64,000 nucleotides of DNA, taken from the sequence record OR532817.1. One strand, 5' to 3'. The notes below the pieces were generated by a model. The model did not search any database. It worked only from the letters and a program-made list of their open reading frames with translations, and was not told the DNA's origin. Made by a program: the position numbers and the translations under genes. Positions within the stretch are counted from its first letter, which is position 1. Each line of letters opens with the position of its first letter. Shown one piece after another: positions 31,149 through 35,261 of the stretch.

Positions 31149-32348
31149 ATGAAACTTTGTAAGCATTGCCAGAAACCAAAATTCAAACATCAACGTGAAA
31201 CACTGAATTGTCCAAGTCCAACTCGTTCATTGGCTGCGAATTTTAATAGTACAACTGTATATGATGAATATGAATCCGATCCAGTACATTATGCTATTGC
31301 ACAAGTACAATTGAAAGCTGATATTGCTGAAATTACTGCTGGTCTTGATGAACTTCTTGCTAAAGGTGATATTAACGAACAGTCGTATAAAATGAATTTA
31401 GCAAATGCAACTGCTAATCTTACTCGTATTGCTGAAAATAGTAAACGCGAAGAATTTGAACCTAATGCAGTACTGTATGTTTCTTTTAACGATGTGGTGT
31501 ATTTTTATGATGCACAATGGGAAGGAAATGCAGTACTAGAAGGTGAAAAAGCAGTAGAAGATTTATATTTTTCTGATAAATTCAAAGAATATTATGATGC
31601 TGGTATTGTACCAGTATTAGAAGTGTTGGATAATGAAAGTACTGAAATGATTAAAGTAATTTATAATGCAGAACGTGCTGAATTTATTTCTGATATTAGT
31701 CGTGATAAACATTTGAAAGAAAAAGATACAAAACAAGAAGAAGTATCTTTATCTGATTTGAATAATGATGATTTTGTACTTCCATTGCATGATAAACAAT
31801 GGGTACTAAATACTATTCGAAAAAATTCTGACGATGATTGTGATATTGAAGAACTTGAATGTGCATTGAAAAGCTGTGATGGATCTATTGTTCTTGGTAA
31901 ACCAGATACAGAAAACGATGGAACTTATCTAATGCTTGGTATGAAAACCAACGATGGTTTCCTTGAAAATGATTACTGTCTTCTTGATAACATTTTGCTT
32001 AAAGATTGGAGTGTACTTGAAAATTCAGGGTTGATTGAAATTGGTACTTTTGAAAGCCACATTGACATTGATGAAAGCAAAAATAAAGGTATTACTACTT
32101 TTATGTCTGAAGTAATTGCACGTTCATTATTCAGTACTGAAGCATTGGATATGAAAAGTACGGATGATTGTAAAGCATTCTTGAAATCAGAATACAATGT
32201 ACAAAAAGCAAAACGCATCAAGAAAGAAAAATGGGGTAAAATTGAGTACCGAATCTTTGAAGATGATAATGGTGAACAGTATACTATTGTCACTTACTGT
32301 GATAAGTTGATTTCACATTATCCATTTGCTTACAATGAGGATTATTAA
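31149..32348 (+). CDS. acidic hypothetical protein with an N-terminal CxxC...H...C motif
   Basis: 399 aa; LCKHCQKPKFKH...NCP. Confidence 0.8.
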   Translation: MKLCKHCQKPKFKHQRETLNCPSPTRSLAANFNSTTVYDEYESDPVHYAIAQVQLKADIAEITAGLDELLAKGDINEQSYKMNLANATANLTRIAENSKREEFEPNAVLYVSFNDVVYFYDAQWEGNAVLEGEKAVEDLYFSDKFKEYYDAGIVPVLEVLDNESTEMIKVIYNAERAEFISDISRDKHLKEKDTKQEEVSLSDLNNDDFVLPLHDKQWVLNTIRKNSDDDCDIEELECALKSCDGSIVLGKPDTENDGTYLMLGMKTNDGFLENDYCLLDNILLKDWSVLENSGLIEIGTFESHIDIDESKNKGITTFMSEVIARSLFSTEALDMKSTDDCKAFLKSEYNVQKAKRIKKEKWGKIEYRIFEDDNGEQYTIVTYCDKLISHYPFAYNEDY

Positions 32349-32566
32349 TGATCATCTATGCTGTTCAGGAAATTGATTTTTATACTGAAGAATACGACAA
32401 TCAAAAAATTCGTAAATTATTTTTAAATTTAGACGCTGCACTTAATTATGTAAAAACTACATATGATATTAAAATTACTAACGTTAATACATGTAAAACA
32501 TATATCGAAAATGATGAAGAACGTGGAGAAGTTTCCGTTGGTATTTATGAAATGAGTGTGTTATAA
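32348..32566 (+). CDS. hypothetical protein
   Basis: 72 aa, coupled. Confidence 0.75.
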   Translation: MIIYAVQEIDFYTEEYDNQKIRKLFLNLDAALNYVKTTYDIKITNVNTCKTYIENDEERGEVSVGIYEMSVL

Positions 32567-32588
32567 TTAAATAGTTTTTAACAAACAA

Positions 32589-32707
32589 GAAAGTACTGTC
32601 ACCGTGCATCTGGGTAAAATCAGTATAAGTCCGTAAAGCACAATGCCAATACTCAACAATCTCCCTACTCCTTGAGATCTACCAAAGTTGAGGGTGGTAG
32701 TACTTTC
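32589..32707 (+). ncRNA. candidate structured ncRNA or 5' leader
   Basis: 15-bp closing stem with two G-U pairs and two internal arms; GC-richer than the flanks; extended -10 at 32559-32567. Confidence 0.55.
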
Positions 32708-32728
32708 ACCTTTTAAGAGAAACTTAAT

Positions 32729-33193
32729 ATGTTTTCACAAATTACTGATAAAAAAGAAATCAAAGAGATTAAAGAATTATTTTTAGAAGGAGAGTATATT
32801 AATACTGTTTCTTTTGAGAATGGTACACCTTTCCACCAATCAGTTAAATTTGGTAAATTACGTAATTTACAATTTAAAGACAAACAAACTTTTGAAAAAT
32901 TTCATGAAATTAAATCTCCAAAAATTGAAGATGTAATTTCTGCATTGTCTTTGGATAAAGCTTCTTTCACCAATACAACACATCGTCGATATAGATTATG
33001 GGCTGTAAAATATATCGATAAACATATTCTTATTTCTCATAATAAAGATCGTGGTATTGATGTGTATTATGATCCAGGATTATTCGTTGAGCATGATGTA
33101 TATAATATGCTTTATAATTATTATAAAACAATTTATGAATCAAAAGGAAACACCGATTTTAAACAATATTATCCAGCGTGGGATGAATTATGA
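32729..33193 (+). CDS. hypothetical protein
   Basis: 154-aa ORF. Confidence 0.8.
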   Translation: MFSQITDKKEIKEIKELFLEGEYINTVSFENGTPFHQSVKFGKLRNLQFKDKQTFEKFHEIKSPKIEDVISALSLDKASFTNTTHRRYRLWAVKYIDKHILISHNKDRGIDVYYDPGLFVEHDVYNMLYNYYKTIYESKGNTDFKQYYPAWDEL

Positions 33194-33541
33194 CAGTCAA
33201 AAATGAAATCAAACTCCAAGATAAAGTTGTTTTTATTTCTGGAACTACCATCCGACGTGGTACAGTGATAAAAATCAACAAAAGTACCTATAAAATTGAA
33301 TTCAAAGCTACACTGTTCCATAGTACAACTGGCACTGAAAATATTAAAAAAAGAAAAAGTAGCACATGAAGATGATGTATTAATCGCATTCTGGGATAAC
33401 GTTAAAGATAAAAGTCATATGGGTAGTCATTTGAATTATAATGAACATCAACATCTTGCACAAAAAGCTACACGATGGGTTGGTACGGGTTTTTGTGTAT
33501 GGTTGAAGCCAGATGGACAACCTCATTTACATATTAGTTGA
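33190..33541 (+). pseudogene. frameshifted gene (KOW/SH3-like N-terminus) split at an A7 run
   Basis: ORF 33190-33369 stops 17 nt after A7 (33346-33352); removing one A fuses it to the 33296-33541 frame. Confidence 0.6.
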
Positions 33542-33786
33542 GAAATATTATGATTTTATTAATTATTACATTACTGTTAGGATTTTTTAATTGTTTCATT
33601 TATTTAAGAATTGAAAAGAAAGAAGGATATTGCTTTCATAGTACAAAAGATGGTAAATTAGTTTCGATGTTTAGTATAGAATCTCCATCAATATGTAAAT
33701 TCTTTATTCTTTTACAATTCATCCCGTTTGTTAATATTGTTTTCGCATTTTTATATCTCTTAGATATTCTCAATGGACATTTATAA
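33538..33786 (+). CDS. small membrane protein
   Basis: two hydrophobic helices, TTG start overlapping the previous stop. Confidence 0.65.
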   Translation: MRNIMILLIITLLLGFFNCFIYLRIEKKEGYCFHSTKDGKLVSMFSIESPSICKFFILLQFIPFVNIVFAFLYLLDILNGHL

Positions 33787-34442
33787 TGAATATTAAAACA
33801 ACAGCAGATAAGTACTGGTTCATTATGAACCATCCAAAATTTGTAAATAAAAATTACATTGTACCAAAAATTGAAATTGAACCACATAATGTATGCCCAC
33901 AAACCAACAGAATTGAACAGTATGAATATTTGAATACAAAAGTTCAGTACTGGATTGAGTTTTATATCCCAGTACAAGAAGATGGAAAATGGGATATTGC
34001 ACATGATTACAAACACGATTGTGGTGGTGATACGATGGATGAAGCAATCGACTGCTTATACAATTCAGTACTAAATGAATATGGAAATTATACACAAGAA
34101 GAATTGGACAAAAAAGAAGACGAAGTGTATAATTACAATAAATCCAAGGTTGGTGGTGCAACAATGTCATATATTTTATCTAAAATCCACGAAGACCTGT
34201 TTGAATACGTAAATGATAAAATTTTGCCAGATGAAGAAGCGGAATGCTATAATAATAACACAGTTGGTTATTATGAAAACAAAATTAAAGAATTAAAAGG
34301 AACTTTAAATTCATTAATCGAATTCAAAAGAAATGCACCAAAAGAAATGCACAAAGTGATTGACAAAGACATAAAAAACGTAGAACATGACATTTTTGCA
34401 AATGAAATGAGTATTAAATTTATGGTGGATTTAGATCTATGA
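33786..34442 (+). CDS. hypothetical protein
   Basis: 218 aa; HDCGGDTMDEAI pattern recalled from phage hypotheticals. Confidence 0.8.
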   Translation: MNIKTTADKYWFIMNHPKFVNKNYIVPKIEIEPHNVCPQTNRIEQYEYLNTKVQYWIEFYIPVQEDGKWDIAHDYKHDCGGDTMDEAIDCLYNSVLNEYGNYTQEELDKKEDEVYNYNKSKVGGATMSYILSKIHEDLFEYVNDKILPDEEAECYNNNTVGYYENKIKELKGTLNSLIEFKRNAPKEMHKVIDKDIKNVEHDIFANEMSIKFMVDLDL

Positions 34443-34807
34443 ATAAAGATCTTTCAAAATTAGTTGAAGACCTGCGACAGATGCCGAAAGTTGAACAAGT
34501 TGGGTCGTTTAAACGTTTTTTGGTTATTGCACGTGCATTAGATAAAAAGGGACGTGTACTCAGTACTAAAACTAATTCATACACACAAACACATCCAGTA
34601 CAGAAGAAGTTTGCAGTTAAAGCTGGGCGGTGTGAAGCTGTATGGCTCCATGCAGAAATTCGTTGTTTGTTAGCTGCAAGAAAAGATGTTCATACATTAC
34701 TAATTGCCAGAATTAACAAAGAAGGTCTTCCTGTTCCAGCAAAGCCATGTTCTGTTTGTGAACTGGCTATAAAAGAATATGGTGTAAAAAGGGTGATTTA
34801 TACATGA
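34439..34807 (+). CDS. cytidine/dCMP deaminase-superfamily zinc protein
   Basis: LHAEIRCL and KPCSVCE motifs. Confidence 0.75.
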   Translation: MNKDLSKLVEDLRQMPKVEQVGSFKRFLVIARALDKKGRVLSTKTNSYTQTHPVQKKFAVKAGRCEAVWLHAEIRCLLAARKDVHTLLIARINKEGLPVPAKPCSVCELAIKEYGVKRVIYT

Positions 34808-35105: not shown

Positions 35106-35126
35106 AAGCACCCTAGTGGTGCTTTT
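35104..35126 (+). terminator. intrinsic terminator
   Basis: AAAAGCACC-ctagt-GGTGCTTTT. Confidence 0.85.
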
Positions 35127-35163
35127 TTCCATTTGTACAAAATATAATCTAAGTGACTTTTTA

Positions 35164-35205
35164 TTGATTTAAATCAAGAATAAAATCACCTTTTAGTGAT
35201 ATAAT
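35164..35205 (+). promoter_or_regulatory. putative FNR-dependent class II promoter of the nrdD operon
   Basis: TTGAT-TTAA-ATCAA at 35164-35177; TG-a-TATAAT at 35197-35205; box centre about -41.5; poor -35 element. Confidence 0.75.
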
Positions 35206-35261
35206 ATGTTACGTAGCATTTAAATAAATCTACCACATAATAAAAAAATCAAGGAAGAAAA

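Follow-up and report, generated by a model that had tools for sequence, protein, structure and literature searches.

The 162-nt gap at positions 32567–32728 of the window analyzed here (the whole 64,000-nucleotide stretch of sequence record OR532817.1) contains a multi-helix element that is almost certainly a genuine RNA structure maintained by selection. The window derives from the 350-kb genome of RCIP0023, a Klebsiella jumbo phage and RaK2-like Alcyoneusvirus, with which positions 32300–33000 are 100% identical. The element constitutes a new RNA family of a known general kind, without a relative in Rfam 15. The original prediction, made from the sequence of this region, had proposed a phage small RNA or a cis-regulatory leader. 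That it is a structured RNA is borne out by covariation, by an excess of G-U pairs and by the lack of any Rfam or tRNA counterpart and of a conserved open reading frame (ORF); the evidence that bears on the choice between the two roles is weighed below.

Architecture of the element in RCIP0023

The genes around the element are tightly packed on the plus strand, on which all of the features described here are also located. The gap is bounded by a 72-aa ORF (32348–32566), the upstream neighbor of the RNA in RCIP0023, and by a 154-aa ORF (32729–33193), the first ORF on its 3′ side. The fold is closed by a long stem, P1, in which the 5′ strand GAAAGUACUGUCACC (32589–32603) pairs with the 3′ strand GGUGGUAGUACUUUC (32693–32707) over 15 bp, just as originally described, with a G-U wobble at 32598/32698 and a U-G wobble at 32599/32697. 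The 119-nt limits proposed at the outset (32589–32707) coincide exactly with the ends of P1 in every homologue, and the element is indeed richer in GC (0.36–0.39) than its flanks (0.22–0.32). The minimum free energy fold of the plus strand (−32.5 kcal/mol, z = −2.81, equaled by 0–2 of 200 shuffled sequences) is the structure that had been predicted, and the reverse strand is unremarkable (z = −1.09).

Within P1, the junction segment J1/2 (GUGCAU, 32604–32609) carries a GUGC that is invariant in 29 sequences and unpaired in the family consensus. It is followed by the hairpin P2 (CUGG-GUAAAA-UCAG, 32610–32623), whose CUG/CAG pairs are invariant and which RNAalifold predicts independently. The first inner arm of the original prediction thus survives in part: its CUG/CAG helix is a fixture of the family, but the enclosing GUGC/GCAC helix, present in the window, was dropped from the family structure as not conserved, GCAC being found only in the RaK2 group and at loci L006 and L007. 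A GUA/UAC helix proposed during the analysis was likewise rejected for lack of conservation. J2/3 (32624–32637) contains the near-invariant block UAUAAGUCCGU, of which AAG-N-CCGU is conserved in 29 of 29 sequences. A tentative mini-hairpin, GCA-CAA-UGC (32638–32646), is energetically marginal; versions of it recur across lineages (CUC-AUA-GAG, AGC-UUA-GCU, CGC-ACA-GCG or a 2-bp GC/GC stem), and it is broken in XbC2 and L357.

The remaining arm, P3, begins with an outer helix in which CUCAAC (32652–32657) pairs with GUUGAG (32687–32692). Above it, an inner helix and its apical loop occupy 32659–32678, with AUCUC (32659–32663) and GAGAU (32674–32678) enclosing the loop CCUACUCCUU. Both helices of this arm had been predicted; the outer one covaries, but the inner one, 5 bp long in RCIP0023, is lineage-specific and shrinks to 0–4 bp elsewhere. 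The interior of P3 contains an invariant pyrimidine block, UCCCUACUC (32662–32670), with CCUACU unchanged in 29 of 29 sequences, and a 3′ bulge, CUACCAAA (32679–32686), whose ACCA is present in all sequences. Downstream of P1, a U/A-rich tail (ACCUUUUAAGAG..., 32708–32728) runs to the next start codon, and nearly all homologues have a tail resembling YYUUUAA(U/G)U after P1.

Homologues and evidence for folding as RNA

Homologues were collected with blastn, pattern scans and nhmmer/Infernal. Trimmed at the ends of P1, they comprise 29 distinct sequences of 111–121 nt from about 27 isolates in at least five genera and from a dozen metagenomic contigs, all of them ∼350–370-kb RaK2-supergroup genomes or fragments thereof. 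The carriers are Alcyoneusviruses, fENko-Kae01, the Salmonella Munch/7t3/SE_PL/PHA46 group, Escherichia EJP2, Erwinia Hallingskeid and Kaldavass, the Mimasvirus members GAP32, CBB and XbC2, and the Eneladusvirus members fHe-Yen9-03/04, Serratia BF and six pEa_SNUABM phages. Every blastn search located the element at a single place per record, and the covariance model has one match in the window. Between lineages the RNA is 73–100% conserved in sequence while both of its immediate neighbors vary. The Asteriusviruses 121Q and Turkey5 retain the neighboring operon with no copy of the RNA adjoining it.

Covariance models R1 and R2 found no further members in 1.7 Mb of unrelated viral loci. Loose patterns run against IMG/VR (TCCCTACTC..CTACCAA; the P1 ends; CCGTGC..TCTGG..AGNCCGT) each returned more than 100 loci, mostly by chance, and among 185,579 bacterial and archaeal genomes a strict pattern gave 0 matches and a relaxed one gave 2 chance matches, both rejected by R2. 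Coincidence explains a few short sequences that look like P3 (L020, L102) and the 3′ end of a tRNA (L122). The element had been described as unannotated, and under almost all homologue matches there is no annotated feature. Short ‘hypothetical protein’ ORFs are annotated across it in the K64-1 RefSeq record (NC_027399.1), in 7t3 (MK773491.1) and in PHA46 (L378:3451–3579); judging from reading frames that differ between lineages, these are probably spurious.

The original prediction was to be abandoned if homologues showed no compensatory base changes; such changes are present in the helices across the 29 distinct sequences. In the alignment of these sequences (A6), 95.2% of structure cells are standard pairs, compared with 79% after shuffling, and none of 500 shuffles reaches the observed value; sliding the partners by 1–3 columns lowers pairing to 36–48%. 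Double-sided changes affect 17 pairs. Ten of the 14 pairs of P1 show them, with 99.2% of cells paired. In the family this stem has a lower part of 10–12 bp and a top of 3 bp (GCC/GGC, GCC/GGU or ACC/GGU), in most cases with an internal loop of the AA/G or A/G type between them. The lower stems are very dissimilar in sequence (GAAAGUACUAU, GAAAGUAUUGU, GAGAAAUACAU, GAAGUACUAU and others). The outer helix of P3 exists in more than 10 sequence versions of 5–7 bp across lineages, and at its base all four junction-proximal pairs carry double changes (98.2% of cells paired), with a C-G pair replaced by U-A in L006. In P2 the fourth pair varies between G-C (19 sequences) and G-U (10), and a fifth, closing pair has been acquired independently in two forms, U-A in the Mimasvirus type and G-C in EJP2. 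Unguided RNAalifold recovers P1, P2 and P3, and fold z-scores range from −2.2 to −3.9 in 12 lineages. Among Alcyoneusviruses that are 97–99% identical, the few substitutions in the element fall at unpaired positions or convert A-U to G-U.

Helix cells contain 43 G-U or U-G pairs and a single A-C, and the covariance model gives 145 bits for the plus strand as against 24 bits for the reverse strand. The 43:1 ratio and the strand bias of the model together indicate that the folding molecule is plus-strand RNA rather than DNA. No conserved ORF runs through the element in the homologues: the longest open frame switches strand and frame between lineages, and element lengths differ by non-multiples of three.

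The helices drift around four invariant single-stranded blocks, CCGUGC, AAGNCCGU, UCCCUACUC and ACCA, shared by the 29 sequences from at least five genera. Inside P3 it is the sequence that is conserved (UCCCUACUC and ACCA) while the helices change. Invariant blocks amid drifting helices are the signature of what may be a specific binding surface or a tertiary core. As a hypothesis drawn from the alignment, base pairs may form between UGG(N)(N) of P2 and (N)(N)CCA in the P3 bulge. L357 and L365 speak for this pairing of the P2 loop with ACCA through one compensatory change, in which GGUA:UACC has become GGUU:AACC; most sequences have a C-A mismatch at the site, where a local hairpin is possible instead. 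The suggestion that the CU-rich apical loop pairs with Shine–Dalgarno (SD) sequences is not borne out across the family: it rests on CUCCUU, a motif carried by the RaK2 group and L357 only. What is invariant in the loop is UCCCUACUC, and the complement of that block is not enriched in the window.

Comparison with established RNA families gave no match at gathering threshold in the window for any of the 4227 models of Rfam 15, which include all riboswitch, ribozyme, Y RNA, 6S and SRP models. At E ≤ 10 on 401 nt, nothing was found on the plus strand of the element, and the same holds for five homologous loci; the sole overlapping permissive match is to U4, on the minus strand, at 12 bits against a threshold of 46 bits. 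A hit to the RT-17 RNA (RF03020), seen at L363 only, was rejected because it reaches 21.3 of the 40.4 bits needed and its alignment skips 95 nt into downstream coding sequence. ARAGORN detects no tRNA or tmRNA gene in the 64-kb window, in agreement with the earlier statement that the fold is not a tRNA cloverleaf.

Neighboring genes and expression signals

In every lineage checked, a gene for a ∼212-aa protein lies downstream of the RNA in the same orientation and is followed by a dCMP deaminase gene and, further on, by Tmk (in some phages) and/or NrdD. The RCIP0023 version of the first protein has 218 residues (33786–34442, phrog_16370), and the dCMP deaminase is encoded immediately after it (34439–34807; PF00383, phrog_174). 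The RNA ends 19–26 nt before the start codon of the ∼212-aa gene in L005, L007, L363, L364, GAP32, CBB, Yen9-03/04, BF and EJP2, and is separated from it by one to three unrelated ORFs in the RaK2 group, fENko/Munch, Hallingskeid, XbC2/Kaldavass and L110/L089/L358. The 3′ flank of the RNA (for example L003:3136–3160, L373:2313–2330 and L089:4934–4960) is a hot spot of gene gain, at which at least six different, unrelated sets of ORFs are located between the RNA and the ∼212-aa gene, depending on lineage. Cassette exchange appears to use the RNA and this gene as anchors of homology.

The upstream neighbor also varies, being the 72-aa ORF in RCIP0023, tyrosyl-tRNA synthetase (TyrRS) plus a small ORF in GAP32 and CBB, and a DNA methylase in BF. 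In the Mimasvirus/Eneladusvirus loci (L373–L377, L380), MazG, GroES and tyrosyl-tRNA synthetase are encoded just upstream of the RNA. A 399-aa protein of RCIP0023 (31149–32348), considered as the equivalent of TyrRS, proved unrelated to it.

Homology to the closest relatives of RCIP0023 breaks next to the element. RaK2, K64-1, Muenster, KP13-7, phiKp_21 and one other Alcyoneusvirus are 97–99.5% identical over a stretch that ends at about position 32727. An 820-bp insertion (32714–33533) is restricted to RCIP0023 and one or more contigs nearly identical to it; it holds two orphan ORFs, of 154 aa (32729–33193) and 81 aa (33296–33541), and relatives that do not carry it have 32713 joined directly to 33534, as seen both from the end of blastn homology and from a contig joint (32713>33534). 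The 154-aa product has no family match, and its homologues form two clusters only.

The ∼212-aa protein has no match in Pfam or NCBIfam, to sequences in the PDB, or at a significant level to any fold. An AlphaFold2 model of the 218-aa protein (pLDDT 81) consists of an N-terminal α-β-β-β-α domain (residues 1–100, pLDDT ∼90) and a C-terminal helical hairpin. Invariant residues of the N-domain include H, C, H and D-x-GG-x-T, and homologues that consist of the N-domain only are present in Vibrio and Shewanella phages. Foldseek pairs the model with several double-stranded RNA-binding domains (dsRBDs) at levels that are not significant (E 0.4–1.2, probability 0.2–0.75, TM < 0.5), VIA-align matches the helical hairpin only, and the ESM Atlas suggests Nmad4 (score 0.79), a match that finds no confirmation in hmmscan. 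The predicted resemblances to dsRBDs and to Nmad4 are thus weak, and may serve as leads rather than findings.

A candidate σ70-like promoter with 10 of 12 consensus matches, TTGGTA-18-TGtTATAAT (32538–32567), overlaps the end of the 72-aa ORF and is among the better promoter-like sites of the region. The extended −10 noted originally is thus present in the window; across the family it does not recur, being specific to the RaK2 group. Strong σ70-like sites precede the RNA in only three of ∼16 lineages (the RaK2 group, EJP2 and Yen9-04), at 15–24 nt upstream, and a σ70-like search found no promoter conserved across lineages. Phage-specific promoters have been described for CBB (PMC5259590). The two best σ70-like sites of the region, each with 11 of 12 matches, are TGGACA-17-TATAAT (34105–34133) and TTGCCA-18-TG-TATAAT (34224–34253), both inside the 218-aa ORF and upstream of dCMP deaminase.

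A terminator scan detected no terminator-like site flanking the RNA in the window or in the lineages checked. The 3′ end of P1 lies 8–13 nt from the SD without overlapping it, and neither conserved pairing of the 3′ tails or SDs with the element nor any SD-sequestering helix was found. In 121Q and Turkey5, a canonical terminator hairpin (AAAAGCACC...GGUGCUUUUU) is located in the gap upstream of nrdD (L371:6376–6650 and L372:5754–6026) and is followed by more predicted hairpins; the matching gap of the window is 156 nt long (35106–35261). The literature yielded no transcriptome for the RaK2-like group. The only public ‘RNA’ runs that contain the element are wastewater libraries, in which it seemed to be enriched. 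The signal was traced to low-depth (2–5×) contigs from relatives without the 820-bp insertion, and these matches are silent on transcription of the element.

Possible functions of the RNA

The reading that we favor, tentatively, is that the nucleotide-precursor operon has the element as its leader, acting in cis as a sensor. The RNA would be the structured 5′ leader of an operon that starts with the ∼212-aa gene and goes on to dCMP deaminase and NrdD, with Tmk included in some phages, and the nucleotides that never change in its junction and loops would create a pocket or surface to which a small molecule or protein binds. Occupancy of this site would adjust the amount of downstream message that is produced or that survives, via elongation, Rho or RNase access, and owing to the long P1 the leader could also last as a stable fragment after processing. 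Judging from the alignment, hiding of the ribosome-binding site is probably not the mode of action, because there is no conserved SD helix and ORFs are inserted before the operon in several lineages.

Several observations are consistent with such a leader. The operon is the sole constant part of the surroundings, on the same strand and often directly adjacent; this gene association does not count as independent evidence, because it concerns a single syntenic locus. The lack of an independent σ70 promoter in most lineages, and of a terminator in those checked, agrees with an RNA carried within a longer transcript. Unpaired nucleotides that do not vary are a typical mark of RNAs that bind ligands or proteins. 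Counting against a cis role are the lack of an expression platform, the inserted ORFs, and the retention of the operon without the RNA in 121Q and Turkey5; moreover, the switching P1 helices of known riboswitches are far shorter and less stable than the 14–15 bp of the element.

The nearest parallels to a leader are similarly mixed. Like orphan riboswitch candidates and junction aptamers, the element has ∼110–120 nt, helices radiating from a junction, an aptamer-like covarying fold with invariant junction and loop nucleotides, and a coding-strand position upstream of one pathway (dCMP deaminase, Tmk, NrdD). It differs from them in its 14–15-bp P1, in having no expression platform (neither terminator/antiterminator nor SD-sequestering helix), and in its constant position upstream of the 212-aa/dCMP deaminase unit being known from a single syntenic locus of related phages in one supergroup. 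Autoregulatory leaders bound by the protein encoded downstream are exemplified by the T4 gene 32 and gene 43 operators and by ribosomal-protein leaders. The element resembles these as a structured leader directly before a conserved gene in at least nine lineages, with a possible single-stranded protein site; unlike them, it keeps P1 off the SD, is separated from the gene by one to three ORFs in at least six lineages, and has no copy beside the operon in 121Q and Turkey5, where the protein is kept. HK022 put, which consists of two simple stem-loops just after a promoter and acts in cis in antitermination with no expression platform, is likewise a phage-encoded structured element heading a long operon; the element differs as a multi-helix junction, mostly without a conserved promoter, and no similarity between the two was detected.

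Nearly as likely is a stand-alone, stable small RNA that acts in trans, whose invariant loops might engage a phage or host protein, or another RNA, with the element serving as scaffold, decoy or partner. Such an RNA might be cut from a polycistronic transcript at its A/U-rich flanks or have its own promoter, and would be protected by the long P1. This reading accounts equally well for the sealed ends and for the indifference to immediate neighbors: the long terminal stem closes the molecule between A-rich and U-rich flanks, and both adjoining genes vary while the RNA is conserved at 73–100%. The strong σ70-like sites 15–24 nt upstream in three lineages also speak for it, as does the α-β-β-β-α N-domain of the ∼212-aa protein with its weak Foldseek matches to dsRBDs, although that resemblance is not significant (E 0.4–1.2, TM < 0.5). 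Most lineages, however, have no promoter and those checked have no terminator, so that the promoter and Rho-independent terminator of an Hfq-type or other independent small RNA gene are not found together; no candidate target emerged, the loop complement not being enriched in the window; and an RNA acting in trans does not require a constant position and orientation before one operon.

Stable phage-encoded RNAs do have precedents in T4, whose RNAs C and D are of unknown function. The relative PA5oct expresses abundant unexplained ncRNAs, ncRNA001–004 (PMC7318152). The element is alike in being phage-encoded, non-coding and intergenic, within the ∼100–300-nt range, in the genome of a T4-related large myovirus; it differs in that it has no sequence or Rfam relationship to these RNAs, lies outside a tRNA cluster and is known from sequence alone. 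Y RNA (YrlA) and other long-stem RNAs share with it a similar size and a terminal stem that closes a multi-branched, pyrimidine-rich interior, but the element has neither an Rfam Y RNA match nor a tRNA-like T or D arm.

It is unlikely that the element is a purely structural part of an mRNA, such as an RNase III/E site, a 5′ or 3′ stabilizer or an unusual terminator, with no specificity for a ligand or partner. The intergenic position, the long duplex of P1 and the U-rich tail after it would suit such a role, but a processing hairpin needs neither invariant single-stranded blocks nor a junction conserved in at least five genera. Unlike intrinsic terminators, P1 is AU-rich at its base and encloses ∼90 nt, and the terminator scan does not report it.

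Explanations at the level of DNA, like those by chance or coding, are as good as excluded. A hot spot of recombination, a cruciform or a site of protein binding in DNA might be suspected from the break in close-relative homology right after the element and from the different genes inserted there by lineage. The 43:1 ratio of G-U to A-C, however, places the helices on one strand only, so that a symmetric cruciform would be mismatched on the other, and the model score of 145 bits falls to 24 bits on the reverse strand; the element is single-copy in each genome, unlike repeated recombination stem-loops, including those of the PeSL type in T4-like phages, and the nearby insertions are explained simply by the RNA as a conserved homology anchor. 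Chance complementarity or a small protein-coding gene, for which the short ORFs annotated over the element in K64-1 RefSeq, 7t3 and PHA46 could be cited, is the least credible of all given frames that shift strand between lineages, compensatory helix substitutions and 0 of 500 shuffles attaining the observed pairing.

A more specific and rather unlikely proposal is that the RNA is the aptamer of a new sensor class found only in giant phages, either a riboswitch-like RNA for the (deoxy)nucleotide pool or one half of an RNP with the adjacent 212-aa protein. In the first version, a nucleotide-pool signal could set expression of dCMP deaminase, Tmk and NrdD. In the second, the RNP partner could be the 212-aa protein, whose modeled N-domain has the order of elements seen in dsRNA-binding domains.

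RaK2-like jumbo phages are under development against Klebsiella, E. coli, Salmonella and Erwinia, and more than 80% of their genes are unexplained. Whether it acts in cis or in trans, the RNA merits annotation, several records carrying probably spurious ORFs over it, and it is small enough for direct structural and biochemical work. The family described here, with 29 sequences, heads the phage's own DNA-precursor genes. If it is a sensor of a metabolite or protein, it would be a rare, phage-specific case in which an RNA controls nucleotide metabolism; should it instead be a stable RNA that acts in trans, it would be a new component of host takeover or of an RNP.
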